A DNA stretch of 64,000 bases from Marsupella aquatica (Eukaryota; Plantae; Marchantiophyta): NCBI GenBank assembly GCA_973895155.1, contig OZ316899.1, positions 1,325,573 through 1,389,572 of the forward strand. The letters are read 5' to 3'. Position 1 is the stretch's first letter. Every line of letters starts with the position of its first letter. The notes below the pieces were generated by a model. That model saw only the letters and a program-made list of their open reading frames with translations. It searched no databases and had not been told where the DNA came from. This document shows positions 25,190 to 59,621 of this stretch, one piece after another. The position numbers were made by a program, and so were the translations under genes.

Positions 25190-25379
25190 TGTTAGAATAT
25201 ATTTAACCCTTAGTCCATATGATGATACAAAGAGGTATGCAATACCTAGATATAAAGAGACACAAGACTAGGAGAGGGTAGTTACAACTACCCCAATGTA
25301 CAACATAAAATAAGCCACATTGGCTTAAAGGAAAATCAATCATCTTTTGTTGGTGTATGTATATTTTCATAGTTTAACA
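25190..25379 (+). repeat. 5' LTR of copia element 2
   Basis: TGTTAG...TTAACA; 189/190 identical to 30573-30762. Confidence 0.97.
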
Positions 25380-25391
25380 CGTTATCAGCAC
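25380..25391 (+). promoter_or_regulatory. PBS complementary to the anticodon arm of tRNA-Ile (half-tRNA priming)
   Basis: CGTTATCAGCAC directly after the LTR; its reverse complement GTGCTGATAACG matches eukaryotic tRNA-Ile(AAU) GUGCU-AAU-AACG if A34 is inosine. Confidence 0.7.
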
Positions 25392-25537
25392 GTGATTTTG
25401 CTCCTCCAACAACTCTCGAGCTACTCATAGGCCTCTTATGAATTTTTTCCCTATTCATGTGAACGAAGCATCGAACAAAATTCCCCAAGACACATTTCTT
25501 TTCTTTCGCCAAGTACACCACAAAATTTTCATCGACT

Positions 25538-28500
25538 ATGACAATATTGGAGAAGCTCCAATTCCCATTGCTCGCAACAGATGGCGACAATTATTTATCT
25601 TGGGCACAGAATACAGAAATTGTTCTCAACATGAAAGGCCTCGGCGACATTATCTTAGCAGATATCAATGGCACATTACAACAAAAGGCTCAAGCACTGT
25701 ATATCATTCGCCATCACCTCGTTGCCGAACTACAACTTGAATACCTTACAGAGTTTAATCCCCGAGCCCTATGGGACGCTCTCAAATTGAGGTTCGACCA
25801 TCTGCATCTAATTTCCCTACCAGCTGCATGAAATGAATGGATTCATTTACGAGTTCTAGACTACCCTACAATTGCCAAATTCAATAGCGCCTTATTTCGG
25901 ATAACTGCTCAGCTAGCAGCCTGCGGTGAACCAATCGATGAAGCAGCAAAGATTGAAAAGACTCTTTCTACATTCTCGGCAGTGAACATGCAGTTATCGC
26001 AGATTTATAGACAACGCCATTTCACCCAATTCTCAGATTTGATTGCAGTCATGCTCCTAGCTGAAAAGAATGACCTCCTCCTTTTGAGGAACTCTCGCGA
26101 GCGACCACCAGGCACGCTTCCTAAACCGGAAATACAATTCACGAATACCAATAGAGGTCATTCCTCTTACAATCGACCTCGTGGCCAATTTAATGGCAAT
26201 CCAAGTCATTTCAATAAATTCCACAAGAGACAACAATTTCGCACAGACAAAGGGAAAATCTACAAGCCTCCCATGAATTCTTGGTATCGTAACCCCAATC
26301 ATATGCCAAATAATCCTGCACAGGATTATCCCACAAATAATCAGCCCAAGTGTTTCCGTTGCGGTGGGACAGGGCATATCCAAAAGAATTGCAGAGTTCA
26401 AGCTCACCTAGTCAAACTATACCAGGCCACCCTCACAACATCCAACACCTTAACAGCCGCACATCACTTGGAGATCGATGACGATCTCTCCAAATACACG
26501 GTTGCACCTCCCCCACCAGAGGTTCATATAGTATCCCATGAAACGAATGACACATCTCTCGCCGGTGCTGATATTTGCATTCTTGACAGCGGCACTTCTC
26601 ACTCAATCCTAAAAGACAAATGTTATTTCCAGCACATATACCCATCAAATAGACCTGTGACTACTATCACAGGTATAAACCAATTAGAGGAAGGCCATGG
26701 ACCTGCCCAACTTGCCCTTCCTCAAGGCACAACCATTAAAATTGCATCTGCCATATATGCCCCACTCGCAACACGGAACTTACTAAGTTTCCATGATGTC
26801 CGCCAAAACAACCTCCATATACGCTCTGCACCCGACAACCACATAAACTCTCTACAGATTTTTTGAGAAACTGATAATGGCCCTATTACACTAGAGACAT
26901 TACCACTCCATCCCCCCGGCGTTTATGCCACTAAGATCATGTCTTACAATTCCCAACGACAACAATTATCCCCCACAGAATTATGGCATATCCGCCTCGG
27001 CCACCCAGGCCCAGGGATGTACCATAAAATTATGAAGGACACCATTGGCATACCAAAAGGAGTACACCCATCCACGAAGTTAGACACTTGCATCCCCTGT
27101 GCACAAGGCAAATTTATCACTCATCTAGCTTCCACTAAAAACACCTATCAAATCCCTGACTTCCTCTCACAGATCAATGTGGACGTCTGCGGACCTATTG
27201 ATCCACCGAGTGGACCATTTAGGTTTTTCCTAGTAATGATATGCTCCTCAACCAAATGGTCCTCTGTTTCTTTAATTTCCACAAGAAACCTTGTCTTTGC
27301 CAGACTGCTAACACAACTTATACGTCTTCGCACTCAATTCCCTGACTCTCCTACCAAAATAATTCGAATTGATAATGCTGGCGAATTTACATCACCAGCA
27401 TTCGATGACTTCTGTCAAGTCCTGGGCATCACAATTCAATACTCAGTACCATATGTACATTTCCAGAATGGTACTGCAGAGGCATTAATAAAACATTTAC
27501 AGATGATCTCGAGACCTATGCTATTACAGACACAACTCCCACTTACAGCCTGGGGACATGCTATACTCCATGGCGCTGCACTACTGCGATATAGACCATC
27601 GGCTTTTAATATTTACACACCACACCAACTAGCATATGGCTCTATACCAGATATTACACACCTGAAAGTGTTTGGCTGCCTTGTTCTAGTACCCATTCTT
27701 GGCCCCAAGCACACCAAGATGGGACCACAGCGTCGACGTGGCATATATATTGGCTACGACTCTCCCTCGATAATAAGGTATCTCGAACCCACCACTGCTG
27801 ATGTGTTTCGAGCTCGATACCAGGACTGTAAATTATGTGAAGAAATCTTCCCAACACTTCTAACTCCAGCACAACTCTCCAAACAACCTGTCTCAACACA
27901 CACATTAGAATGGACAACAAAGGATCCATTCTGGAATGATCCTCGTACTCAATTGACAAACGATGAAGTGAAACGCATTCTGAATCTCCATCAAATTATG
28001 GAGAAAATACCTGACGCATTTAATGATGCTACAAATGTAACGAAATCACATATAGAAGCAGCCAATACTCCTATGAGAATTCATATACCAGATACTTGAG
28101 CCACAGACCTCGCTCCCAAGGCTAAGCGAGGTAGACCTTCAGGTTCCAAAGACTCTAGACCACGGCAAAAGACACCTGTATCAACACATTTATCCTTACA
28201 ATTACCGCCAATTATACAGGATGACAATGAAGAAATCTCCATCCACTATATGCATACTGGACATTTATGGCATCGCAATTTAACTAAACCAGATGAGCAT
28301 TTTGCTTTTCTTATATCCCAGATATAACTAAAGATTTACCAGACCCTTGGACAATTAAAGAAGCACAACAACGACCAGACTGGCCCAAATGGAACTCTGC
28401 TATTAACTCCGAGCTTGATTCTCTGATATCTCGTCAAGTTTTTGGAGAACTCCGAGTCGTCCCTGTTGCACAACACCTAACTGGGTATAGGATTATATTG

Positions 28501-30209
28501 ATACGCAAACATAATGCCGCAGGTGAAGTAATCCGCTACAAAGCCAGACTTGTGGCTAGAGGCTACACGCAAATATATGGCAAAGATTACGACCTTACTC
28601 ATTCACCGGTCATGGACTCCATTACCTACCAATATCTGATTGCTTTTGCCCTCACACATCAAATTCGTATGCATCTTATGGAGGTGGTAACTGCTTACCT
28701 TTACGGTATACTTGATACTGACATACAAATGCAAGCTCCACCTGAATTAATTCAGAGGGTAATTTTCCACATTAAGGGGGAGCATACAACCTCCCCAACC
28801 CCGGACCTAAAGTCGGGTATTGTAAGATTGTCCCTACACAGGACTTTAAGGACCACCTCATTCACTCAGGCCAGATGATACCTGCTGAAATACATGACTC
28901 ATCAGCGGTCCAAAATAACAAGGCCCAGCAAATTGCTAATGGTGAACAGTCAGCGGATTCACCATTGAATTATACTGACTTACTCGCTGAGGTAAATCCT
29001 GTTCACCACATAATCAATAAAGCCAAGAAATCAGAGAAAGCATTTGCTGTACAGGTTCTTAGGTCACTCTATGGTTTAAAACAGAGTGGTCGCATCTGGT
29101 ATAAACATTTCCGTGCTGAGATGCTTGCACTTGGTTTCGTGAATGAGGACATTGCTCCTTGCCTTTTTATCAAAAGACATGGCACTGAATTTATAATCAT
29201 AGCCATATATGTCGACGACATTAACCTAATGGGTACTAAACTCATTATGGATCAAACCATTACCACACTTAAGAGCATATTCGAAATGAAGGATATTGGT
29301 CAACCCCTATTTTGTATTGGCATTCAATTCAAACATTTATCCAGCGGTATTCTTATTCATCAATCTACATATACCAGAAAACTATTAAAACAATTCAACA
29401 TGGACAAAAGCTATCCAGTCACGACACCTATGGAAATTCGATCTTCGAACACATCCAGAGATCTATATAAGCGCAGGACCGAACACGAACCAATCTTGGG
29501 CCCAGAGAAACCTTACCTCTCTGCTATAGGAGCCTTGATGTACCTGGCGAATCAAACTCGCCCAGGCATCTCTTTCGCTGTCCACTTGCTTGCCCGCCAC
29601 AGCTCCCAACCGACTATTAGACATTGGAATGGCATTAAGAGGATACTGCGCTACCTTCAAGGTACAATTGACACTGGCCTCTATTACCCTAAAGATGTGC
29701 CTAACGAATTGATTGGTTACGCAGATGCAGGTTACCTTACAGACCCCGATGATGCGAAATCCCAGACGGGATATGTATTTCTACAAGGACATACAGCCAT
29801 ATCCTGGAAAAGTACCAAGCAGACTTTGACGACCACATCCTCCAACCACGCGAAAATCATAGCACTATACGAAGCCAGCCGAGAATACCTGTGGCTTCGA
29901 CAGCTTATCAATCACATCCAGTCGTCTACAGGCCATGCAATTCTTACCAAGCCTACTATCATCTACGAGGATAACAAGCCTTGTGTTGATCAGATAGTTA
30001 AAGGCTTTATCAAGGGCGACCGAATCAAACATATTGCCCCCAAATTTTTCCACACGCATGAACAGCACGGGGACCAAATCAACGTTCAATGGATACCTTC
30101 TAAAGATAATCGTGCTGACCTTTTTACGAAGCCCTTACCTCACATTCTTCACAAAGCGCATTCGACTGGAATAAGCCTCCGTAGATTATCGGACTTCACT
30201 GCAATCTGA
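25538..30209 (+). pseudogene. gag-pol: Copia gag-pol polyprotein with several stops and frameshifts
   Basis: MTILEKLQF..GDNYLSW gag; CFRCGGTGHIQKNC knuckle; ILDSGTSH protease; LWHIRLGHPG..CIPCAQGK and IRIDNAGEF..QNGTAE integrase; YKARLVARGY, SLYGLKQSG and YVDD RT; GYADAGY..HIAPKFF RNase H. Confidence 0.95.
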
Positions 30210-30563
30210 CTTCCCCACCTCTTCCATAAACTTCTTACTCCATTGCGACACGACAATACTTTTTTTCCCCACGACACCTTCTCTGTTCTATGCATATTCT
30301 ACTGAACGTATGTTCTCCATACTCGACCATTTCAACACATCCTATCGAATACTCGTTTAGATTTAGCCATACATGATTACACTCCTGCCCACCTATTCTT
30401 ACTAGTTTTAACTCATTACATGTAAGGTAGTGACACTCTTTTTACCCCAGAAGAAAGCAGGGGGTTTTTAATGAGGTCATACCCCAATGAGTTTTTCCAT
30501 TATATTCAGAACTAGGCTTAAATTTATTTCCAAAATGGTTACTTTAAGAAACATAAAGTAACC

Positions 30564-30572
30564 AAGGGGGAG
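30564..30572 (+). promoter_or_regulatory. Polypurine tract
   Basis: AAGGGGGAG abuts the 3' LTR. Confidence 0.9.
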
Positions 30573-30762
30573 TGTTAGAATATATTTAACCCTTAGTCCA
30601 TATGATGATACAAAGAGGTATGCAATACCTAGATATAAAGAGACACAAGACTAGGAGAGGGTAGTTACAACTACCCCAATGTACAACATAAAATAAGCCA
30701 CATTGGCTTAAAGGAAAATCAATCATCTTTTGTTGGTGTATGCATATTTTCATAGTTTAACA
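30573..30762 (+). repeat. 3' LTR of copia element 2
   Basis: Direct repeat of 25190-25379. Confidence 0.97.
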
Positions 30763-31543
30763 CAAATGACGTTTAACATACCAAGCTATTGTACAGTTCG
30801 ACTGTCAAAAAAGCTCCCCTCAATTTGAACTTCCTTCACTACCTTGGCTGTGTTGCCAACAAAGCTCCTTTCGAACCTCCTCCACTGACTGCCGATGTCT
30901 AGCTTCAAGCTATTTCACAATGAAAGCTCCCCTGTATTCTCAATGGTTTGAACGAGAGTCCTCTAAATCAATTGCGACCAATGTGACTCAATGCGTCCAT
31001 GGAAGGTAGACCTCAGATTATCTTGCTAGCCATCGTTGCTCTCCCTTCCTCACCCGACATTGAAACGTTCACTACTTTCTGATTTCGGCAACTATGGTTT
31101 TCAAGCTCGGTTTTCACCATCAAAAAGTTTGAGCAATTGTGGAATTCTGATAAAACTTGCCGCGTCTGCAAGTCCTTACCACTATTGTCATTGTCGCGGC
31201 TAGGATGGAAGGACTCAGAGTCCTTGTTTTCAAATAGTCCTTGACAACGCGGGATAATAGGACATAATTATCGTCCACTTTCCAAAGTCAATTCAAGCAG
31301 GCTACTTCCTCGAGGACATTTATTAAACACTTCTCGCATGTAAGTACTTTATGACTTAAATTAGAGTTCTAGGCTACTAAATCCAAAAATGGTTATAATG
31401 GAATCATTTCTCAATCATTTAATTCTAGCCTTTGATCTGTGAATTTTCAATCTTGGCCATTGAGGGATATGTTGCACATTTAATGCAACATGGAAAGGAC
31501 TTGAGTCCTTGTCTAGGAGAAAAAAGGACAAAAATGGTAGTCC

Positions 31544-32660
31544 TCAATCATGCAATCCACCAAGTCCTACTCCACTCCAATCAGTGTGTAGCTGAAATGG
31601 TCGTCCCGAAACGGGTCTTCTCAAAATAGGTGTTGACACCAATCTTTCCTTCAATTCTTGGAAAGCATGCTCTTGGTCGTCACCCCAAATCCACTCCTGG
31701 TCCAACTTAGTGAGTATAGTTAAAGGCTTGGCAAGTTGGCTAAATCCTTTAACATACCATCTATAATAGCTCGCCAATCCCAAGAATGCACGAACTCTAC
31801 TCGCATCAGCAGGACGAGGAATCTGTGTAATGGCCTCCACCTTAGTCTCTTGCACGCCCAATCCTCCTGGGTAGATAGTGTAGCCCAAATACTCAATTTT
31901 GTCTTGGAAGAACTTACATTTGCCAGGATGGAGTTTCAACCCATGTTCTCTCAATCTCTCCAACACAATCTGCAAGTGTCTCTGATGTTCTTCCACCGTA
32001 TCAAAATAGACCAAAATGTCGTCAATGTAACATCTCACAAAATCCAAACCTGCAAGAATTTGATCCATAACTCTTTGGAATTCAGCTAGTGCATTCTTCA
32101 ACCCAAATGGTAAGAACAACCACTGATACAAATGATCTTTGCCATAAGAATCAATTCCCCAAAATGTTGTCTTGGATCTATCAGAATGCCTAATTGGCAA
32201 CTGATGGTACCCCGCCTTGAGGTCCAACGAACTAAATATCTTTGCATGCTCCACAGCATCAAAGATCTCCTCGGTGTGGGCATGGCATATTGATCAGATT
32301 TTGTCTGACGATTAATAGGTCGATAATCACCACACATTCGCCTATCTGTGTAATTGCCATGCACATCCTTCTTGGCTGGCATCACTGTGGCAGATGCATA
32401 CTCCCCGTATGAGATCTCCACCAAACCAGCCTCCAACAAATCTTGAGTTCTACTCTGGATCAAAGCCCTCTTCATGTCACTATATCGATATGGTCGTCGA
32501 AAGATTGGCGCATCACTAGCCAATTTGATTTGAATACCAGGACCCTTCAATGTCCCTAAATCCTTCATACTAAATGCAAAACAATTCCAATAATTCTTCA
32601 AGAATTGATGCATGCAACGGCTCTCCCTCCTGGTCAACTTAGGACCAATCTGTGATTGCC
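31544..32660 (-). pseudogene. Gypsy reverse transcriptase and RNase H start
   Basis: Canonical gypsy RT motifs including YIDD; one frameshift near 32270. Confidence 0.93.
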
Positions 32661-32661
32661 A

Positions 32662-32850
32662 ACTCTCCATCAAAGCTATGACATCTTCCTTTGGAGTTGA
32701 AGAGGCCACAAGCCGTGGGCTGTGACTCTCCATCAAAGCAGTGACGTCTTCCTTGGGAGTTGAAGAGGCCACAAGCCGTGGGCTGTGACTCTCCATCAAA
32801 ACTATGATGTCTTCCTTTGGAGATGAAGAGGCCACAAGCCGTGGGCTGTG
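32662..32850. repeat. Three 63-bp tandem repeats (21-aa ESHSPRLVASSTPKEDVTALM) in the MTase-RT linker
   Basis: Units start at 32662, 32725 and 32788. Confidence 0.9.
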
Positions 32851-33049
32851 GATGGAAGAGTCAGTCGCTCATTGCTATTCATCAATAGTTTGAGCAACCT
32901 TCTTCTGCTCAACAATATGTTCTGCCTTGGCCAATCCTGCCATAGGTCTATCAATTGTTTGCTCGCCCCCAGCTGTGACCGCTACTGTCTCAGTAGGCCG
33001 CAAGCTCACCAATGGACGATCTGTAACATTAGAACTATGCATTATTTTG

Positions 33050-33880
33050 CAATTGTTCAGCTAATCCCAAGCTGATAATCCAAGTCAAGCAATTGAAATC
33101 CATGGCTTGACCAAGGACCTGACAACGTGAATGCTCTGACACCGAGGCCACTGCCGTGGTGCTGGTAAAAAATCCTATAGCCCGCTCTCTCTCATTAGTG
33201 GTAGGCTCTACTAGTCATTGTAGAGTTGTATCCCACACAAGTCCAGGGCCACTTGCTCAAAATGCGTATGAAGCAGAATGGCTCACAAAAGTGGGTAATG
33301 CACAACGCGGACGCCCAACAACATTCACCACTGCCAATGGTGGTCGATCAGATTGGGTAACACTTTGTGCACGACGCCCTGGATCCAAAATACTATCCAC
33401 CACTAAGGTTGTTGAGCGAGGTACACCATCAAATGCTCGCTTTAAGACCTCACATGGTATCAAGTTAGTCCACCATAATCGTGGGCGATGTGCACGAGAA
33501 CCCACACGTGCAGCATCCAATAACACAGCAGGTCCAATCCAAGATCGCACTTGATGAACACTAGCAACAATTCGATGATGATCATCACCCAATAGTGGGA
33601 CATTCTCCAAAATGTATGTAGGAGAATGTGTCTGATGCATTTGGAGATGGCGCAACACCCATAACATCTCCCAAAATAATGCAGATCTTGGATCATGAAA
33701 TCCATGTCCAATTCCAGCCCGAGATTGACCCTGACATGGCCAACCCGCAATCACCAAATCAATGGGGCCAACACAATCCAAATGATCCGCCCCCAATAAT
33801 GAAATATCATCAGGCAATGCATGCTGATAGCCACGAACGGCATCCACTGGCAACAAATGTGGATAACGTTCCACCACCTA
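33050..33880 (-). pseudogene. C5 cytosine DNA methyltransferase domain inside pol (motifs IV, V, VI, VIII, IX, X; motif I absent)
   Basis: DLVIAGWPCQGQS (IV, catalytic PC), DPRSALF (V), YILENV (VI), AHRPRLWWTN (VIII); past two in-frame TGA stops, EPTTNERERAIGF (IX-like) and VLGQAMD (X-like). Confidence 0.88.
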
Positions 33881-34282
33881 CTGCCACACAATAGGAGTGG
33901 TATCCAATGGTGAAAGGGTCACCGGTCCATCTGCAAAAGACTGTTGTGCTCCTGACTCCGGTGTAAAAGCATGACGCCAGGCATCATGTATCAATTGGGC
34001 CGCATTTTGTTGCAAGGCCTCTCCAGTACCCCATACTAGTGCCACAATAGTATCAACAGGTAATCACCCATCATGTGTTCCTCATGTGGCTCCTCCATTG
34101 CTGGAATATCTACTGCATGTGCATTACCTTCAATCAACTCATCAGATCCAGTAATCAAACTATTAAATGCTGCCAAAGACAATGGTGCAGATTTAGGACC
34201 TCCCACAGGTCCACTAAATTGCACTGGAAATTGGCTCAATTGAGCATCTCTAGATTGCCAATGGGGTTGATACGACACCAAC

Positions 34283-34579
34283 TCATCCCAAATCAAGAAC
34301 AAATCCCATAGGATAAAGTACTGTACATCCCACTAACACATCATATGATTCAGCCTTAGTCAAAATAGCTTGAGCCTCGATCCGTGAGTTATCCTTTGGA
34401 TGATCCTCTTGAATCCTAAGTTCAAGTGCTCGTCTGCTGATATGTTGTTTGGGTGTAGGTCCTCCCAATGAAGTCTGAATGGGAAAGGGACACTCCTCCA
34501 AATCATTTGGACGCAATCCCAATCCTTGTATCGCAGACTTACCCAACATCAAGGGCTGAGCACCAGTATCCAGTAACAC
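34283..34579 (-). pseudogene. Gypsy aspartic protease
   Basis: LLDTGAQPLMLG and YDVLVGCTVL motifs. Confidence 0.85.
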
Positions 34580-35285
34580 TCATTCTGGCTGGTATATCGC
34601 TCCAAAAGGCCCAACTAATTGGAAGATACCACTCCGATTATCCAATGATACCACACTAGGTTTAAACCTAGTTCTCTCAAAGGCAGGGCGTGCTGGTAAC
34701 TCCATCAACCTCGCCGCTGCTGCTTGCCATGTTTCACCACTAGCAATAGGTGGAATCAACTCCACAACTTCAGATTTATGCATTGTCTCTGCACGAGAAG
34801 CAACAACTGGAGTGTCTTCACATAATGTGGCCACCAATCTGAACACTTCAGCTGGACTAACTCCCAATGTCATATTTTTTGCTGAAAATAACGGGGGGCA
34901 ATGGTCATTCAAAGTTGTCATAGAAAACACAAAGCGATTCTTCAACTCCAAAGCAAATTTTCTCTGATTTTCTTCCAAAGCGATATTTTGCTGAAAGTGA
35001 TTCTTCTGTCCAAACTCAATCTTCTTCAACTTCTTCCAGAACTTTCTTTTAGAGATCACAACAGGTTCAAGGATGGTTGATTGCTTTGAATATATTGGCT
35101 CTAAATGATGTCAAAAAGTTTAAAAGTTTATCAGTTTTACCACATATCTCCATATTGCCATTCCACATAACCCCCTTCTCAAATGTGAAGCGACCTCGCA
35201 AACACCATCATCTTCTAGGGCCACGCCTTATTTGGGGAGGCTGTGCCAAAGTATAAATATCCAGTATAGTATACTCAATATCACT

Positions 35286-35393
35286 TGTCATGCGGACACA
35301 CATCCATACACAACTCACATCGCGGCACACCATGTAAACAAGAAAACAGATAATCACACAATACACAACACATGTACGCCAAAATCCATAACA
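35286..35393. repeat. 108-bp LTR-like repeat, copy 1
   Basis: TGTCATG...CATAACA ends; about 94% identical by eye to 35777-35884. Confidence 0.75.
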
Positions 35394-35776: not shown

Positions 35777-35884
35777 TGTCGTGCGGACACACATCCATAC
35801 ACAACTCACATCGCGACACATCATGTAAACAAGAAAACAGATAATCACACAACACACAACACATGTACGTCAAAATCCATAACC
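35777..35884. repeat. 108-bp LTR-like repeat, copy 2 (candidate 3' LTR of the INT-PHD element)
   Basis: Direct repeat of 35286-35393; preceded on the minus strand by purine-rich AGGAGGGC (PPT-like) and ~170 nt after the PHD stop codon. Confidence 0.65.
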
Positions 35885-36057
35885 GCCCTCCTAGCTGGTG
35901 GTTAGGTCCCGCTAACTACAGCTAGCCCAAAAACTAAAAGGAAGTATACACCTTTTGGGTGCACAATCAAGAGGCCGGGTGCAAAGGAGCCCCATTGTTA
36001 ATCGCCTGCCTACAATCTATACTACCTAATGAGTTTTATGCTAACTGAAGCCACTCT

Positions 36058-36096
36058 CTATCTACAATTGGGACACAACCACCATCCTTTAGGAAC
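36058..36096 (-). pseudogene. C-terminal tail of the integrase PHD finger (VPKGWWLCPNCR*)
   Basis: Continues ..LTPPLDSVP from 42968+ in frame once 36097-42967 and one TSD are removed. Confidence 0.88.
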
Positions 36097-39000
36097 TGTG
36101 ATACCTTGCCAGGATCACAAAGTACCTAGTTAAGCCTAAAATAATGGCTAAATAAAAATTAGTTAGATAGTATAAGGTAGAAATAAAGACCAAAGCCGAT
36201 TACAACACGTCGTGGGGAGGATTGCGATAGGATCGGATCCAACGGTTGTGATTAAGCGGGATTAGAGTTATGACCTAATCTGGGCTTGATCACACAAGCC
36301 ATCGGGAGGCGGCTTTGCGGGGAGGGGACCGACACTCTGTGTACTTGCTCATTCTCTTGTCGCTCGGGACCTAGGAAGGCGGAAGCAGCTGCCGATCAAT
36401 TGAGGAAGGTGGGTAGGGAATTGCTCAAGCTCCTCTTTCATTCGGTGGAATGATCACAGTGAATCAAGCGGCTAAGTTTTGGGGCTGTTTGCTTGAAGAA
36501 GCACGGCAGCTCATACCAACTTACAAAGTCGTTGAGCCGGAACAAGCAGCAAGGGAACGGGTGGAGCTCGCGCGGTTATGGGGAATTCATAAGACGGCTT
36601 TTGTGGGAACAGAGGAGGTACTCAAGAAATTCTTATGGATTCCCACCAGTGCCAAGCTTGACAAGTTGCTGATCAAAGAGAATCGAGTCATTGGAATTGG
36701 GAGGCGATTAAGAGCGCTGGGCAGCCGGTTTGGGAGTTGAAGGGTCACACTTTGGCTTGGACCAAGGAGGCCATTTTTGGAGAGTTTTCAGGGACTGAAG
36801 AGATGAAGCGAAAGGGTAGTTTGGCGTCTACAACACCAGCTAAGCGGAACCGGTCTGAGAGGCAGGCCAAGGTCGTAGCCGTGCCAATTTGAGATAGGGC
36901 AGTAGAGGATAAGTTTATGGTGGGTTGGGCGGATAGGCTACATGCCAACTTATAACTGCAGTTTGCACGAGAAGAAGATGAGGTCTTCTGTGCTATCCAG
37001 GATAACAAGTATTTTGGATACATGAACAACACCGGCTTAGAGGGATTCATCCGGTTGCCATGGCGATTAATTGACATACCAGAGAAAGATCTATTAGACT
37101 TTGTAGGATACTGGGAGGCTTCTTCTAACACGACGCTGATGTATGGGAAGGTGGTGGAATTAACGCCAGCACTAATTGAAGCCATCTTTGCTCTTCCACG
37201 AGGGAATAAAACTAAGGTGGAGCAGCGAAAGACATTGCCGGATAACCAAATCCGATGATTTCCAGGGCCCTCTACTAAGAATGGGTTCTTTAGAAATCAA
37301 TGCACTAATGCACATGTGGGGCAGTTGATTCATTTCTTAAGAGTCACGCTACACTGTACATTGCCAAGAGCAGATATCGGCAAGGCCCAGGTATTTTTTG
37401 GGGAGAATATCGATTCAAGTCGAGACTACAATGACTATCTCTTAATGCAGTTAAAGAAGGCATTAAATGAAGAGAAGCAAAGTATTGGGGAAGGAGAGGT
37501 ATCCAGACTAGGGTACCATCTGCAATTACTTTGCCAATTTGCAAGAAGCCAATCTTTTGCACCCGTGCTACCGCTACAAGAATGGATGCCAATCACAGCA
37601 CCCTTGGAGGAGGACGAGGAGCCCCTAAACAAACGACGGAAAGAGAAGAGGCCGACAATACATGCAATTCAGGGATGGGAGAATTCCCCTCTCAAGGTGG
37701 TAACATATGATGTGGTGAGAAATCCATTGCAACGGCCTACTCGTAATAATCCATATGCAGGTATTCAACTGGTAGAGAGGAAGATGACTACCGAAGAAAG
37801 AAAGAAACGGGATGAGCAAATGGATTCGGAGTCAGAAGATGGAAGCCGAGGCCGAAGTCAGGAGAGGCCAGTCCTTAGAGCTTCTAGCCGGGCCCAAGTG
37901 GAGGAACCTGTGGAGGTAAATCAACCAGTGGCAGCCCAACAATACTCAGAGGAGGAGATTGGGGGCTTTGCAGACTGAGGAGGCCGGCATACTCGATAGT
38001 CAGGTTAATGTGGATGACTACGACGATGATTATGTCAATCATGGGGAGAGGCCGGTGCCGGGTGTGAGAACGTTGGAAAGGTTTTGTAGAAGACTTCCCT
38101 CAGTATTTTATGGCAAGCCGGAGGATCAGAAAACCCCAGAGTCTCCGCCACCGGATGTGACACCATTGGAATTTGACCGGATGAAGGAGGCCGAGGCAGG
38201 TTTGAAGGAGAAACTCGCCAAGTGGAAGGTCCAAAATGACATACAAGAACGACAGCTACCAGGTGGTGATTGGTCGAAGGAAATCAAACGGCTTAGTGAG
38301 AAGCAGGCCGAGCCTCTCACTGACTTTGATCAATTATGGGCAGATTATCAAACGGAGAAATTGCAAAAGTATGCCAAAGCAGGACGTGGATCACCGACTG
38401 GACGGTCTCCCGCTAGTGGCGTGGTAGCCGAGAATACTGACATGCCAAAACTGACATAAATATTGTCAAGGGTAACTGAGGGTAAGACAATGCAGTTGGT
38501 TGCGGATCTGGCCAAGACATTCATTGGGCCAGCAGGTACTTATGGGATGCCTCTCAAGGCCACTCCAAAAGAGGTCGAAAGTATGGCCGCTCACATTTGT
38601 GGGATTGTTCCTACAAAGGCAGCCGTAGTCGAGATAAGTAATGCCGATGAATTTGGAGCTGCGGTAACAGGTTCAGACATAGGTACCGCCACCATGGACT
38701 ACCGGAATGTGAAGCCGTGGAAGATCGAGACAGAACGTATTGGAGAGTAGGCTTGGATGGAGGAAGTGAAGGCCAACACTATCCAAGCCGTTTCCTAGGA
38801 GGATGCTACCGATGCCGAGGCCAAGGCCGTTAAACCAAGACCCGAAGCCGGGGAAGCCGAAGGGATCAAGCCGGAGCCGATTGCAGGAGGAGGTGTAGAG
38901 TCGGAAGATTTGGGCTTACCCCCGGTCATCTGACAATTAAGGAGGGCCAGTCATTGGTTGGAAGGAGGACGTGGCGGTAGCAGAAGGGCTTGGGCCAGAA

Positions 39001-42000
39001 GGGTGCGGCCGTTGTAGGATGGGACAGGGCAAGTAGCGCCCTATCGGCTTAGGTAATATTAGGTGTTCGGTTCCCGCATGGTTCCGGGTTAGTCAAGTTG
39101 TGTTTAGTGATTGTGGAATGGCTCGATATAGGTTTATGTAAGAAACTTGTCATTTTTTTGCTTTTTGAACAAGGAATAGTAAGAAAGACGTTTTAAGTCT
39201 TATCGGAGTAACTAGGTTTTAGGAACTTAAGTAGGTAGAATAGGAAAGATAGTGGAATGGAAGGTTATTGAGTTGTAAGCAAGTGACAAGGGATAAGAAA
39301 GTTCTTTATGATGGGGCATACAACGTTCCATCCTTATTTAGAATAGCCGACTATTCCGAGCCGGAGAAACAACCCGACACTTGAAGTCTTAGTTTTGGTT
39401 CAGATTTCTCCCATAGATGCTAGGAGGTCCCTAGAGCACCCCTAAAAAGTTAGATGTCAAGTGGGGTCTCAACCTAGGGTTTCCTTGTGTTTTGGTGTGA
39501 CTTAAATTAACAAAATAGCGGGTCCCGGGAAGAATAGCTGATGAGTAAATTTAGGAGTTCCAAGTGGGTTAAATATGGTCCACTCTATCCCTGGGAACTT
39601 GTGGTAGAACCTGGGTATCTTTGGTTACTTTTTGGGAGCATCTCAAAGTTGAGAAGAATTTTGGAAAACATAATTAACCCACTTTACCTAATTTTAGAAA
39701 ATTGGTGATAAGTTTTTGTCTAGATATTAGTAAACCAGGACATAGTCCTATGTCTATAAAATCTGTAGATATACTCAGAAGTCATTTTGGACTCATGTGT
39801 GATTTTTTGGGGCGGTCCAAAACAGCCTGGAAATACTGTTTTCCCAACAAAAAAATTTAAATTTTTTCTAAGTGTCAACCGCGTCGGCGGCGACCACGAC
39901 TTAAGCACGAGGCCGGGGCGACTCAAGCACGAGGTCAGGAACACCATAAGGGTCAATACATGAGATGCTTGCTTCGAATTGGGATCAAGAGGCAACTACG
40001 AAATTGAATTGAGCTGCTATAGCTTCAAGCATGGGATGCTGATCAGAATTGGCTGGCCGCCTTGATGCTGCTGATTGGAATCAAGCTGCGTGCTATGGAG
40101 AAATAGGCTACTGCTGATCAAGAGCTAGTTGGCTGGCTGTGAGCTATGGTGGGCTATGAAATTGAAGGGCTGGCAGCTGATCAGACTTACTACTGCACCA
40201 GAATTAGAAGGGCTAGCTTCAAGCACGAGATGTTGAGTGTTGGCTGATTAGTAAGTATGCTGCAAGCTCAATAGTGTTGCTGCTCTGCTAGCTACAAAGT
40301 TCAGAAGGGTGAGCTATGGCCGGCTGCTGGAGAATAGAGCTAGGCTGCTAGCAAATTGATTTAATGTAGTAGCAAACGGACCAGCTGCAAGGAAGGAATT
40401 AAGAGGGCTAACTGCGAATTGGTGGGCTATGGCTACTGCAAAATTCTGCTGCAATTTTGAATCACTTGCAAGGCTGGATGGCTATGGAGGTGGACTGAGA
40501 AGGGTGCTGCAAACCTGGTTGAGCTGTAGATTGACTTGCTGCCATTCGAATCCAACAAAGAATGATGCAGTTTCAGATTGAATTCAAGAGAGAGAAAAAT
40601 GGCTGCGAAAATTGATGTCCTTATCAAATTCTTCATAAGAAACGTGAGTATAATGAGAGTACTCTCCCCTAGTGACACCTGGAATCTCCATAAGAGGCGT
40701 GTAAGGTAAGTGTAATCGGGTCACCGCTTACACCCGCTTTACACCAAAAACAGGCCTTGGGAGAATGGGCATAACTTTGGCTAAGGATATCCATTGGGGC
40801 CCAAATTTTGTTGTGTTGAGTTAGGGGAAGGTAAGGCACCCCTTGGTGAAGGTGGAAACCAAGAAAAAGAATCACTCAAATATGTTTTTTGCCGAGGCCA
40901 CAAGGGGGTCCCGATGGCTTGCAAACCAAAGTCGGCATAGGGGAATGAATACCAGATTTAGGGGCTGACCTTTCTTGCACCCATACTACTTTAGTTAGGC
41001 TCTAGGGAAGGGTACTTACCTTTGTTCAAAGGTGTAAGGCCATCATGTTAAGAAAAGTAAGTATAGGGGGTAATTTACTTAGGGTAGTAAAGGGGTTATA
41101 AGTAAAATAAGGCCATCTTTGACTAGGCACAACTTGAGACTCACTCACTCTTTTTGCGAGCTTTCAAGTGGATTGGGAAGCTGGTGAGGAGGAACATAAG
41201 TGGGAGCAGGTTTGGAGGTCAAAGCATGCAATTCATGTGTGGCATATTCCAGGGCTTGGAAGGAGGCCAAACAATAGGTTGTAGGGTGGGCTACGAACTA
41301 TAGAGTTGGACTTTGTGTGTTAGGAGGATTTGGAGGAGGAGTAGTTGGACCCCAGGTCAAGCTTGGTGTGGTGTGGAAGGAGAATAGTATATAAGGAGTA
41401 AGTTTTCATTTGTTAGGGATCGGGAGTCTCATCTCTTAAGTGGAATCTCTACCTTGCCAAGGTAGGGCTAAGCTTGAGAAGGGAGAGGTGGTCCATGCTT
41501 AGTGTGGAGAATGTGTAGTGAACTTTTGTTGTAAAGGTGATGCAATAAAAGGAGACTTGCCAATCTTCATTGTGACCATTAAGTGTGAGTGCATTTGAAG
41601 TATATGAGAGCAAGAGAAGGGTCCATGCTATGATGTAATCTTGGTCTAAGCTCAAAGGGGATGTGCTAGTATAAAACCAAGGCCAAGGAGGCAAGGTTAA
41701 GGTAGAGCACTACTTTGAGACTTAGAAAGGATTATAGCTTGAGGGTGGAAAGTACTTTGCTTGGTGTGTGGTGTTAACAAGAAGTAAGAACAAGAGGAAG
41801 AGTCCTTAGATAGAGGAGCCTTCTCTAGAGCTCAAAGGGGATGTGTGGACCCAAACCAAGGCCAGGGGGGCAAAGTTGAGGAGTAACACTACTTTGAGGG
41901 TCTTGAGGAGACTTAAGCTTGAAGAGGAAAGTACTTTGGGTTCTTGGATGTTTGTGTGAGAATCTACTCTAAGGTGACAGCTTGGAGTGGAGATCTCCCT

Positions 42001-42967
42001 TGCTGATCCTTGGAGCTAGTAGAGGAGAGGGGAAGGGTGTGAGTGCAAAAGTAGTCAAGGGGACTACCTCTCTAGAAGTGGAGAGTTGAAACTACTTATG
42101 TATGGAGTGATTAGACATTGTAAGCACATTTCAGAAGTTTTGTCAATCCTTTGTGACCCTGGTATGACATGGAGCAGGTAGTAGGTAGTTTCTTCGGAGA
42201 AAAGCCACTTAAGCTCCTTGATAAGTGTTTGACAGCGATTGTTAATTAGCAGGTTTATTGCGGTGGAAGGCCGTGATTTGTGGTTTTGATTTCCGCCGAT
42301 TCCCCTAGATGCGCTGCAAGGATAAAAACCTGGGCAGCGTGGCTTGGGGGGCTTTTTCTAGTCAAGACTCTAGTGTAAATCAGTATTACTAGCATAGGAA
42401 GCTCTTGGCTAAATCTAGACCGCGGATTATTAGTAAACCACAAGTTCCCATAGATTTTTGTGCAATTGCTTGAATTGAGTTGGCCTTGTTGCCTAGTTCG
42501 CAGATTCTTGCCAATCATGGTGTTGTGTGTTATGATATTTGTTGCTTGATCGATTTGAGTCAGTTAGAGTGATACTGTGAGCTAATATGATTGCATTGTC
42601 TTGATTGAAGACTGCCAAACCAAACTCTGAGAGAAAGGTGAGGATTGAAAATGTTTTGTTGGTTAAAGTGTGGGTTGAGTCGGTCTGAGAAAAACCTTCA
42701 GCCGGCTTAAGAGATTAAGCTGTAGGGGTACATTCTGGGGGCGGAATACAAACATACTCGACGAAGTCAATTAAGGAATTAGGCATCTCAGCAATACACA
42801 ATTCACAAGCCCATTGAAAGAATCGGTCCAGCATAGTGTGGATCAAAGAAGTAGACCGCGTTTCCAAGCCAAATAGTAGCCAAACCACCATAAGCGGACC
42901 ATAAGTAGTGGTTCATAGCCAGTTGCGGATGGTTCTTGGGGTTAGAGGTGTTGGGAAACGCACCACA
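36097..42967 (+). mobile_element. Giant solo-LTR-like unit, family 2, copy D (6871 bp, probably with nested sequence)
   Basis: TGTGATAC...GCACCACA ends; perfect TSD GGAAC (36092-36096 / 42968-42972); termini and ORF homologous to 53107-57818; no gag/pol. Confidence 0.88.
36450..38932 (+). pseudogene. Family-2 unit-encoded protein, fragmented
   Basis: ORFs 36450-36740, 37022-37258, 37316-37978, 37959-38459 and 38463-38750 align in order with the protein of 54020-57708 (FWGCL..AARER.ELARLW; GLE.F.RLPW; PGVRT..ESPPP..LPGGDW). Confidence 0.82.
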
Positions 42968-43957
42968 GGAACTGAATCAAGAGGTGGCGTCAAACACGCC
43001 AAGTGCCAACCTCTTGAGCAACCATCACAAATCAACATGGTTGCAGCTCCACGGGCGGATCCACACAACATACACCGTAAGCTTGCAGGTATCACTGCTA
43101 GACTAGGATCAATGCTATCATCAATGTTTGAAAGGTGACAAGGTGCACAGTTGCGCACATGATCTTTCCAAACCATACCATCACGACCTTCTAAAACCAG
43201 AATGTCTGATGACAAAACCTTCTGCACTTGTAGAATAGTACGTCTGGCAGTGACATCCAAAGTAGTAGGTGCTGTCTGTTGTAGATACACATAGTCTCCA
43301 GAATGAAATTGCCTGATGCTAGGGCAATATCCTCCTCCCCAAATAGTGGCATACCTCAAAGTATCCCGATGCTGCGCAATAGCTAAGTTCTCAAATGCCA
43401 TGGGCATCACTCTCCAAAACAAGTTTGCCCGTTGAGAACAAGCTCGCATCCACATGTCAGGGTCATCCAACTGCAACACCTCAACAACCTCCCTTTGAAT
43501 GGCTGCTAGCAACACTGGCTCCCTACCATAGAGCAACAAATATGGTGAAAAGGATGCAAGAGATGCTTGCTTACTGAATCGATATCCCATTGCTAACCAT
43601 GATAGCTGGATATCCCAATCATTCACGTGACCCTTCTACAAGCCATACTTCCGCAATCCTCTCTTTACTATCTAGACAACTCTCTCTGCCAATCCATCTG
43701 CCTGTGGATGATCCCTAGACGTCGTACGGTGATCAATCAATGCTTGATCACACAAGGCCTAAAAATCTCCACAAAACTCAGTCCCCTGGTCAGTCAAAAC
43801 CTCAGCAGGAGCACCAAAATGGCTCAATTCACGGTCCAGAAAGGCATAGGCAACTCCTTCACTACCTTTATCTGGCAATGCAACCAACTCAATCCATTTA
43901 GAAAAGTGCTCCACCATCACTAAGGTATAACGGTTGTGACGTCTAGTCAATGGTAAG
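42968..43957 (-). pseudogene. Gypsy integrase core and C-terminus with PHD finger
   Basis: LVMVEHFSKWIELVAL..VLTDQGTEF core, SPYLLLYGREP, then CMLC..ICDGCSRGWHLACLTPPLDSVP. Confidence 0.9.
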
Positions 43958-44861
43958 TGTCACATCATTATGAGTGGTAGTATAGGATATCGGACTATGT
44001 AGGTTTGAGGCTTTCATATGTGTGTTATCTAAATGTTTTAGGGTTAGTGTATGTTTGTGAGGGATAGTTATATATCTCTTTGTGTTGGCTCAAAGGTCTC
44101 ATCTTTTGATGTTGAGCCTTTCGAGCAAAGCTCTAGCGGCTATGGTGTGGCTGTCTAGGTTGTGTGTACGTAACGTGGATTCCTTGAGGCGCAAGGTGCA
44201 TTTGGCTTGACATAAGTGTGTGATCGTGTCAGACAGGATTGTGTGTTTGATTGGCATCAATCGTTGTTCAATTGCTCTTGAAGATTACATCAAAAGATCG
44301 ACTTCAAACTTTGTTGTGCGGACTGTGCAGACAGAAGTTTGATTTCATTTTGGTTTTGTTGTTGACAATTTGTGGTAGCTCGGATCGGGTGTTGTTATTG
44401 AATGGATCGTTGGTATCTCGATCTATTGCAAGTTGGTGCGACGCTTGCATAATTCAAGTGAAGCTTCAAGTTGTTGTTGCTAAGTTGTGGTTTTGGAGTT
44501 GCGGTCTTCATCGATATGCGGTGCTGCATCGTGGAGGACTGATTGTGTGATTGACAAGCGGATGTTGCTGTCAACAATTTGTGTGAGACAGACGATGGTG
44601 TCTGGTCCTATTTGGTGAAGGGAAAGTAGTCGGATGTGTGACTCTTTGTGGTTTTGATTGAGGTGGTTCGATTGGGAGCCCGATACTTGATTATGTTTAC
44701 AATTTTTTTAGGATGCAGTTCTGATTTGCATCAAGTTCCTTGTTGATGGATAGTGCGTTTCTATGAAGGAAACAACGTTGAATGTTGGTGAATTGTGTTG
44801 GCGGCTGTGACGCCGCCGATACGGTGGGTAATGAGTGATTCGGCCTAACGATGCTTAGCAC

Positions 44862-58059: not shown

Positions 58060-59621
58060 GAAGTCTTCCAATAATGCAAAGCTACTTGGTGAACAACGGA
58101 CCGGTTTCACTCGAAGTGGAGTGCAGTTTCGGCCAACAACATACGTAGTGTGATATGCAAACGATGCGTAATGCCACATTGTTTACACCTTTCATGACAT
58201 GGAAAGGGTTATTTCAGCATTTGGAGGGTCCACCCATGGATGATTACCATGAGTTTCGGAAGACCCATTTGGCTGATATTGAGATATGGAGACAACATTG
58301 GTCACCAAACTATGTGTCCATCACTTACGGCACAAGTGCAGTTCTCAACCTGTTGCCCCGGCTGTTGCTTCTTCTAGTAGCACTAGCCAGAGTGGCACTC
58401 CACCAGTATCCACTATTACTCCTACCGGTGAAATTGTGGGTGGGAGTGGAGTTGTGCCAACATTTAACCTTGTGGTGAAGTTCTTTGATGTGTTGAAGCA
58501 GAACTACCAGGGTGTGAGAACTGATAAGTTGAAGGGTCTTCAAGATTTTCAGCGCAAGACTGGAGAGCGTCTACGCGAAGCATACACTTGTATGCAAAGA
58601 TTAATTACAGTCACCAAGGGAGTGACAGAGGCCCAAGCAGTTCAATTTTGGTATGCAATTTTAGATAGAGAGTTGCGGCGTAGAGTAAGAGACGCCACTC
58701 TGTTGAGGGATTCAGATCCCACATTGGCTATTGTTTTTGCACGAGCGCATTGAACTCAATATGGTGAATGAGAAGGTGGTGACTTCCGGATTTGTCAAGG
58801 AAGGCTCACCAAAGGTTGCATCTACACCCACACTGCAACCTACTGTAAGGAAGAGCCAGAGGGAGAAGCCTACAACACGGGAATCTACTAGTCAGAGACC
58901 TATGCCCTCCTATGCTGGATAGCAATCAGGATGTTGGACTTGTGGTGGGGATCATGCACAAAGATATTGCCCGGATAATAGAGGGTCCGGAGGGGCATCT
59001 ATGCCCGATCAACGATTATGTGATCATTGTGTAGTTTCTGGTCACACCAAGGATAGGTGTTTTATACTCCATCCTGAACTACGACGGGGAGGATCGCGTA
59101 CGTATGATCAGGGAAGAGGAGGTAGAGGTGGTGGTCGTGGCCGTGGTATGCCATATGCAGGGAGACATGGAGGTGATGCTCCTGCCACTATCATAGATCC
59201 AAAGGATGCAAAGATTGCTCAATTGGAGCAACAACTAGCTGCCATGGCCAGTTCTCAAGTTAGACCCACTTCTGGTGATGGAGCTTCTACATCTTATGGA
59301 GCTAACGGAGACTTGGCCACCATGGGATTCATGTGTGGCACTGCCCATGTTGATGCATTGGCAGCTTTGACTCAAGGAGCAACCAAAGCCCTTGAGCCCC
59401 GAGGAGCAATGGTAGAGTTGGATCCTCAAAGGGGGGAATCTCGTCGTCAAACAAAGCTTCCCCAATCGTTTACATTGTTAGAGGCAGTTCAAACTACCTC
59501 TATGAACCCGGTTAAGACAAATCCAAGTGTGGATAAGTTGGTGGAATCGGATGATGTTGCAACAAGGATGGCAAGTACCTTGATGGGGGCGGCCACAAAT
59601 ATTGTGCCTGATGTCGGATGA
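58060..59621 (+). pseudogene. gag: Ty3/gypsy-type gag with two Cys/His knuckles, truncated before protease
   Basis: ..KLKGLQDFQRKTGERLREAY.. gag-like core; CWTCGGDHAQRYC and CDHCVVSGHTKDRC knuckles; RGG-rich nucleocapsid segment. Confidence 0.7.

Follow-up and report, generated by a model that had tools for sequence, protein, structure and literature searches.

The window analysed here is a stretch of 64,000 nucleotides from the liverwort Marsupella aquatica (contig OZ316899.1, positions 1,325,573 to 1,389,572 of the forward strand), in which we studied the remains of a Ty3/Gypsy retrotransposon whose integrase (INT) ends in a PHD finger. Judged by identity and anatomy, these remains almost certainly form the 3' half of a copy, now dead, of the type that carries a DNMT3-like DNA methyltransferase (MTase), known as KnitGypsy-Dnmt3. 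The finger is split by a nested insertion, and the locus comprises the following pieces:

42968..43956, minus strand: Ty3/Gypsy integrase fragment, retroviral in type and reduced to its distal two thirds, with the catalytic core, the SH3-like C-terminal domain and the initial 35 residues of the PHD finger.
43074->42970, minus strand: first part of the PHD finger, with zinc ligands 1-6 (C-C-C-C-H-C).
36097..42967, no strand assigned: nested insertion of 6,871 bp; its ends read TGTG...CACA, and a 5-bp target duplication (GGAAC) flanks it.
36058..36096, minus strand: second part of the PHD finger, V-PKGWWLCPNCR, with ligands 7-8 and the second GGAAC copy (36092-36096).

Pfam recognized the integrase core (rve, 43956->43768, minus strand, E 1.5e-9) as well as the PHD finger within the whole 42968..43956 fragment (E 3e-7). 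The first 35 residues of the finger taken alone (43074->42970) scored 35.9 bits against the PHD model PF00628 (cut-off 24, E 7.5e-9). The last codon of this part, a Val (42972-42970), lies inside the GGAAC duplication, the copies of which flank the insertion at 36092-36096 and 42968-42972. When the insertion and one GGAAC are taken out, the translation runs on from ...PPLDSV into PKGWWLCPNCR and ends at a TAG stop codon (36060-36058), which yields a finger of 45 residues that contains all eight C4HC3 ligands at canonical spacing. The join was assessed by translation, the pieces were searched separately, and a natural copy, P0034, stood in for the whole. The first-pass annotation, made from the letters alone, had proposed a full C4HC3 PHD upon removal of 36097-42967 and one GGAAC, and translation and Pfam showed both its coordinates and its reading to be correct.

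P0034, a metagenomic protein of 155 aa that is 92% identical, is unbroken through ...PPLDSVPDGRWLCPNCR to its C-terminal end. In addition, the public sequencing run X5 contains a contig of 321 nt that matches 42966-43154 (97%) and continues leftwards as window 36062-36091; this contig is the empty site without the insertion. Given the uninterrupted P0034 and the empty-site contig, the join is real and chance is excluded. The same data confirm the earlier proposal that an insertion of about 6.9 kb, here 6,871 bp, splits the finger. Many contigs of runs X3 and X5 stop matching at 42967/42968 and then have differing flanks, and the read depth in the public runs is high over 42600-42967, from which it follows that the insertion is a multi-copy mobile element that ends exactly at the proposed boundary. 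High copy number was seen in runs X1-X3 and X5. The element is unclassified: self-BLAST of 36097-42967 revealed neither a pair of long terminal repeats (LTRs) nor a long terminal inverted repeat, five of its open reading frames (ORFs) had no match in Pfam, the largest had none in the ESM Atlas, and TRF and ARAGORN found nothing in the same stretch. It holds a degenerate ORF of around 600 codons (36956-38747, plus strand), and its GC skew is strongly positive.

The copy that received this insertion is dead, as it is truncated after the first catalytic Asp and carries three in-frame stops (43761-43759, 43674-43672 and 43638-43636). More precisely, the integrase fragment begins around four residues past the first catalytic Asp motif of its relatives (WSLDFAG.LP...), so that this motif is gone; the second Asp (LTDQGTEF) and the Glu (GLAER) are retained. 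No frameshift was found in the fragment (43956->42968).

The combination of integrase and PHD finger is a general trait of the relatives. A word search with a 222-residue piece recovered 350 homologues, nearly all with PF00628, and the best of these belong to two liverworts, Calypogeia fissa (76%) and Marchantia polymorpha (72-74%), and to a moss, Sphagnum fallax. The identity to the Calypogeia INT-PHD ORF is 76% over 337 aa, that to the homologues of Klebsormidium nitens 48-50%, and the E-values of homologues were as low as 1e-113. An exhaustive HMMER search gave 1,728 matches (249 at E<=1e-30). The full C4HC3 pattern was present in 207 of the 292 proteins fetched, and the finger had 45 residues in 55 of the 57 homologues with a full finger. 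Within the family the PHD directly follows the SH3-like C-terminal domain of the integrase and ends 0-14 residues before the stop, in the bryophyte subfamily as a C-terminal finger of 45 aa. In the window, as in every relative, rve and PHD share one continuous frame.

Not far from the integrase fragment, the window contains a second piece of a Gypsy-type pol, which does carry an MTase:

31574..34834, minus strand: separate truncated copy of the same family, with the gag C-terminus, protease (PR), MTase, a linker, reverse transcriptase (RT) and the start of RNase H (RH).
33877->33032, minus strand: the DNMT3-like MTase of this neighbouring copy (Pfam DNA_methylase, PF00145, E 6e-11).

The RT of the neighbouring copy matched RVT_1 (E 1e-31) and RT_RNaseH_2 was matched as well; the copy is colinear with the relatives L001, L005 and L007 by tblastn. 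The first-pass annotation had considered that the integrase and this MTase-bearing pol might be one family, and had named co-occurrence in full-length copies as the check and separate MTase-bearing and PHD-bearing families as the refutation. When the stop-free window pieces were used as tblastn queries, they turned out to be colinear in single elements of Calypogeia (L001) and Sphagnum (L005), in the order gag C-terminus, protease, MTase, RT, RNase H and integrase-PHD, with identities to the window pieces of 65-66% (MTase), 71-74% (RT) and 73-76% (INT-PHD). The same layout recurred at four further loci: L006, from a second Calypogeia subfamily, and the contigs L007 (JGI), L010 (ENA) and L011 (NCBI assembly). 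Hence, all six full-length relatives have gag-PR-DNMT3-like MTase-RT-RH-INT-PHD. A local scan of the listed proteins with the window pieces added 61 polyproteins that contain both MTase and INT-PHD, 54 of them ordered RT, MTase, INT-PHD and 7 ordered MTase, RT, INT-PHD. Another 59 proteins start just before the RT, and where the upstream DNA was inspected (L007, L010, L011) it contains the MTase. These sequence comparisons place INT-PHD and the MTase-bearing pol in one family; the co-occurrence asked for was found in six of six loci and in the 61 polyproteins, and the families are not separate. The order RT-RH-INT in all colinear relatives, together with the DDE integrase (rve), is that of Ty3/Gypsy. 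The best PDB matches of the MTase were DNMT3C/3A/3B, and this DNMT3-type C5-MTase is a property of the adjacent copy and of the six colinear relatives, not of the INT-PHD fragment itself. MTase and PHD were not found on one Klebsormidium contig, where the loci concerned (L002, L008, L009) start at contig ends inside the element.

The end of the INT-PHD copy is defined by its own terminal repeats, which follow the finger:

35884..36057, minus strand: 3' untranslated stretch of 174 nt, ending in a purine-rich motif like a polypurine tract (35905->35884).
35883->35777, minus strand: B1 repeat, 107 nt.
35776->35393, minus strand: 'gc' plus A2 (TGTCAC..., a block of 384 nt), between B1 and B2.
35392->35286, minus strand: B2 repeat, 107 nt, ending ...GACA.

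B1 and B2 are 95% identical over the 107-nt repeat, and 21 of the 22 letters of the purine-rich motif before B1 are the same at the equivalent place in the Sphagnum element. That element (L005) repeats the B1-gc-A2-B2 arrangement and also possesses A1 at the 5' end, termini of the TG..CA kind and a duplication of 4 bp (ATCT), with the following repeat blocks:

L005, 3135-3473 and 11741-12331, no strand given: repeat blocks in the layout A1 ... B1-gc-A2-B2.

In the window copy A1 was lost through truncation. Split direct repeats (A1 ... B1-A2-B2) thus take the place of two plain LTRs in the family, and the Klebsormidium loci L002, L008 and L009 show equivalent B-type repeat pairs directly after the PHD. 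The junction of B1, gc and A2 (..ACGACA gc TGTCA..) resembles joined element ends. The 3' end of the INT-PHD copy is at 35286 and is followed by around 400 bp of unrelated DNA, after which the neighbouring copy starts inside gag. The INT-PHD and MTase-bearing fragments in the window are two separate truncated copies; a single permuted or tandem copy was considered and rejected, since the INT-PHD fragment ends at 35286 with terminal repeats of its own.

The place of the MTase within pol varies. Among others from proteins P0131-P0268, two orders could be discerned within a single INT-PHD clade: PR-MTase-RT-RH-INT-PHD (streptophyte type) and RT-RH-MTase-INT-PHD (chlorophyte type). In the latter, which is represented among the chlorophytes by Haematococcus lacustris (P0122/P0280) and Scenedesmus (P0196/P0284), the MTase shares an ORF with INT-PHD and lies immediately before it, as in P0135, and the proteins have a tail of 300-500 aa past the PHD without a Pfam match. 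The position of the MTase is strongly clustered on a tree of the INT-PHD region, with three changes among 103 rows rather than one (FastTree only). Given these three changes, reciprocal monophyly of the two orders is not claimed. In three relatives of the streptophyte type a stop stands between MTase and PHD. The relatives L007, L010 and L011, the copies of which look intact, are otherwise unbroken single frames of 2,027-2,496 codons with one internal stop each, between gag-PR-MTase (ORF1) and RT-RH-INT-PHD (ORF2):

L007, position 4131, no strand given: internal stop.
L010, position 3409, no strand given: internal stop.
L011, position 5408, no strand given: internal stop.

The contexts of these stops are TAG CAA CCA, TGA CAA CTA and TGA CGG, which presumably resemble the readthrough signals of plant viruses. 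Most of the MTase of the streptophyte type would then be made without the PHD, and processing by the protease should part the rest. Because the stop lies between MTase and PHD, an ADD-like design within a single protein is unlikely for this type; for the chlorophyte type a fused MTase-INT-PHD form is conceivable.

As to the finger itself, a phmmer search of the PDB gave PHD2 of DPF2/DPF3 and PHD1 of KDM5A/B as best matches, with ATXR5, AIRE, KAT6A, UHRF1, BHC80, BAZ2A and CHD4 as other near solved domains (E 2e-9 to 1e-5 for the best sequence matches). An AlphaFold2 (AF2) model was built from an alignment of 81 rows on the natural copy P0034, not on the joined window reading. It consists of an SH3-like barrel followed by the PHD, with a mean predicted local distance difference test score (pLDDT) of 76; within the PHD the block means are 83-94. 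Foldseek superposed the modelled finger on PHD2 of DPF2/DPF3 with a root-mean-square deviation (rmsd) of 0.4-0.7 A, and also on BAZ2A with unmodified H3K4, UHRF1 with the unmodified N-terminal tail of H3 and ATXR5 with H3. The rmsd to the PHDs of DPF2, DPF3, BAZ2A and UHRF1 was 0.4-1.0 A, in keeping with a PHD fold, and for the structural matches overall it was 0.4-1.7 A at 39-47% identity. Readers of H3K4me3 with a cage were absent among the best Foldseek matches. The near-invariant positions of the 81 members include the Asp of CDxC, P...P.G.W, the Met that precedes the third Cys, and the Gly ahead of the aromatic residue that comes before the His. The dN/dS of the finger is 0.17-0.21 for the two closest pairs, most pairs being saturated over 45 codons. 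Considering that the closest solved relatives are readers of the unmodified H3 tail and that the Asp of CDxC and PxGxW are present, the PHD is assigned, by sequence and by its model, to the class of such readers. The first-pass annotation had stated that fingers of the PPL..P.G.W.C type often read the H3 tail and had suggested structure prediction as a check; the closest solved PHDs indeed all read the unmethylated H3 tail, and the P0034 model gives a PHD fold that superposes on them. The top matches of the whole model (m6336875ef2b8) were the Tudor-PHD cassettes of PHF1 and MTF2 and the tandem Tudor domain (TTD)-PHD of UHRF1. The SH3-like barrel of the integrase plus PHD resembles a two-module histone reader, with a high rmsd and a different orientation of the domains.

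The family closely resembles KnitGypsy-Dnmt3 of Klebsormidium nitens, a Gypsy element carrying DNMT3 (de Mendoza et al. 2018, PMC5890265), for which DIRS-like split direct repeats are stated (PMC5890265, Fig. 4c legend). The comparison rests on this description. In both cases a Gypsy-type pol goes with a DNMT3-like C5-MTase, and split direct repeats of the DIRS-like kind replace plain LTRs; the Klebsormidium INT-PHD homologues (48-50% identical) are followed by the same kind of repeats. The hosts differ, being here of the bryophyte type (relatives in Calypogeia, Marchantia and Sphagnum). The PHD is not mentioned in the text of de Mendoza et al. 2018 (PMC5890265), our literature search found no paper that links PHD and DNMT3 in such elements, and a paper of 2025 cites only the 2018 Klebsormidium report for DNMT3-carrying Gypsy elements (PMC12344493). 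Compared to the chromoviruses, the chromodomain-bearing Ty3/Gypsy elements (Gao et al. 2008, as cited in PMC6673714), the family likewise has a small domain of the histone-tail-reader type on the integrase C-terminus and the same proposed tethering to a chromatin state. It differs from them in having a PHD instead of a chromodomain and, probably, unmodified H3K4 rather than H3K9me as the mark; scans of the window pieces and of P0121, P0135, P0138, P0214 and P0236 gave no match to a chromodomain (PF00385). PHD fingers of retrotransposons are known in general terms, e.g. from CR1.

The finger shares with PHD2 of DPF3b/DPF2, PHD1 of KDM5A/B, BHC80, AIRE, UHRF1, BAZ2A and ATXR5 the pattern ..MLxCDxCxxGWHxxCLxPPLxxxPxGxWxCPxC. 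A green-lineage Gypsy element with a PHD as accessory pol domain has precedents in Chlamydomonas: REM1, reportedly described by Perez-Alegre in 2005, is said to be a PHD-bearing LTR element, and the figure legend for Gypsy-7a_cRei (PMC9940879) lists a PHD before INT. The family differs from these two in its MTase, none being reported for them.

All this leads us to favour the view that the family is of the KnitGypsy-Dnmt3 type and uses the PHD of its integrase to tether integration, which we regard as probable. The PHD would bind the N-terminal tail of histone H3, most likely with unmethylated K4, and so hold the integrase-cDNA complex at nucleosomes; new insertions would be biased away from active promoters, similar to the effect of the chromodomain in chromoviruses. 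The MTase of the streptophyte type, encoded in the upstream gag-PR-MTase frame, would most likely act as a separate protein. Tethering is the best supported role because the PHD is always fused to the C-terminal domain of the integrase and because of the analogy with the chromovirus chromodomain, and PHDs and chromodomains have been proposed before as guides of retrotransposon integration (PMC6673714). By this analogy we lean slightly towards a targeting role; a specificity for H3K4me0, suggested by the residues of the finger, may apply and is put forward tentatively. Several points weigh against this view. The window copy is dead and silent on function. The eight zinc ligands are invariant in alignment A1, the rows of which were picked by the C4HC3 pattern, making this partly circular. 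Finally, unlike many readers of H3K4me0, the bryophyte subfamily, including the window copy, lacks acidic residues before the first beta strand and has ARG/KGG in place of PDD. The acidic cluster (PDD/DDAD) is kept in Klebsormidium, a second liverwort subfamily and the chlorophyte members, and its loss may mean that the specificity differs or is relaxed.

The same loss would fit a PHD whose partner is not H3 but, for instance, a host factor, another protein of the element or DNA/RNA, or one that is only a structural zinc module, and the PHD of UHRF1 does bind PAF15 and Stella according to PDB titles. We consider this improbable, as the finger shares with H3-tail readers the Asp of CD.C, the PPL..P.G.W.CP.C segment and the fold, with best matches at 42-47% identity and an rmsd of <=1 A. 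About equally improbable is a coupling in which the DNMT3-like MTase of the element is guided or licensed by the PHD, as DNMT3A is by ADD, within an uncleaved polyprotein or a complex, DNA then being methylated where H3K4 is unmethylated. The ADD domain of host DNMT3 reads H3K4me0, MTase and PHD occur together in every spanning relative sampled, their pairing persists despite two places of the MTase in pol, and in the chlorophyte type the MTase immediately precedes INT-PHD in one ORF (e.g. P0135). Against such a coupling stand the in-frame stop plus RT and RNase H that, in three intact elements of the streptophyte type, lie between the MTase in ORF1 and the PHD closing ORF2, the constant fusion of the PHD to the integrase C-terminal domain, the expected processing by the protease, which would part the two, and the canonical nature of the PHD, no ADD family being among the Pfam matches. 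The first-pass annotation had suggested that the element encodes both a chromatin reader and a writer of DNA methylation, loosely echoing the ADD-plus-catalytic design of DNMT3. Both domains do occur in the element, and the echo holds at the level of the whole element, not of a single protein: like DNMT3A/3L, it combines a reader of the H3K4me0 type and a DNMT3-type catalytic domain in one genetic unit. It does not extend to the finger, which is a canonical C4HC3 PHD without the GATA-like part of ADD, nor to the arrangement, in which reader and writer occupy opposite ends of the element and, for the three intact relatives of the streptophyte type, separate segments of the reading frame split by the stop. 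That the finger would be a chance reading, an assembly artefact or a host PHD gene can be dismissed. Marchantia annotations do call short relatives simply 'PHD-type domain' proteins; the Pfam matches and the homologue E-values (to 1e-113), the frame continuous with rve, the uninterrupted natural copy, the empty-site contig, the family terminal repeats that follow the finger and the truncation and stops of the window copy together refute it.

The existence of a DNMT3-carrying Gypsy element in Klebsormidium and of retrotransposon PHDs in general was already known. The points that merit further study are the clade-wide pairing of PHD and DNMT3 and the two positions of the MTase; the copy found in the window is an unremarkable dead remnant among nested transposons. 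Why a parasite should make the enzyme by which it is silenced is the puzzle posed by retrotransposons with their own DNMT3, and an integrase-fused PHD that is always found beside DNMT3, from green algae to liverworts, offers a testable handle on it, the more so as intact relatives exist in the tractable model Marchantia and on metagenomic contigs. One could go further and see in PHD-integrase plus DNMT3-like MTase an obligate chromatin system of two modules and of ancient origin, belonging to a single Gypsy clade of the green lineage that extends from chlorophytes (Haematococcus, Scenedesmus) and Klebsormidium to mosses and liverworts; we hold this to be doubtful, if less so than the coupling discussed above. 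If true, the persistence of the pairing across two positions in pol would point to selection acting on a functional link, such as integration into H3K4-unmethylated chromatin and methylation of the element or its surroundings, and the chlorophyte MTase-INT-PHD could even do so as one protein, which would then parallel the ADD plus catalytic design of DNMT3.

Two further family features were recovered from the window:

32662-32850, minus strand: three tandem 63-nt (21-aa) repeats, ..SPRLVASSTPKEDV.., in the MTase-RT linker of the neighbouring copy.
58107..59600, plus strand: third family fragment, covering the N-terminus of gag and including a CCHC knuckle; in tblastn searches it is 46-75% identical to the gag ORFs of L001/L005.

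By position, the 21-aa repeats sit where the intact relatives have their in-frame stop. On the other side of the integrase fragment, 848 bp of unrelated non-coding DNA (43958-44805) cuts the integrase at 43957. This block begins with TGTCAC, a start it shares with the A repeat of the family; identification as A1 was rejected for lack of similarity. A further nested element may end here, though its opposite side was not located, and units of a 4-kb repeat start beyond the block at 44806. Around 800 bp past the point where the homology of the neighbouring MTase-bearing pol stops (~31574) lies a Ty1/Copia element (25190-30763, plus strand) with gag CCHC, integrase and RVT_2, the LTRs of which (191 bp) are 99.5% identical, indicating that it is young.

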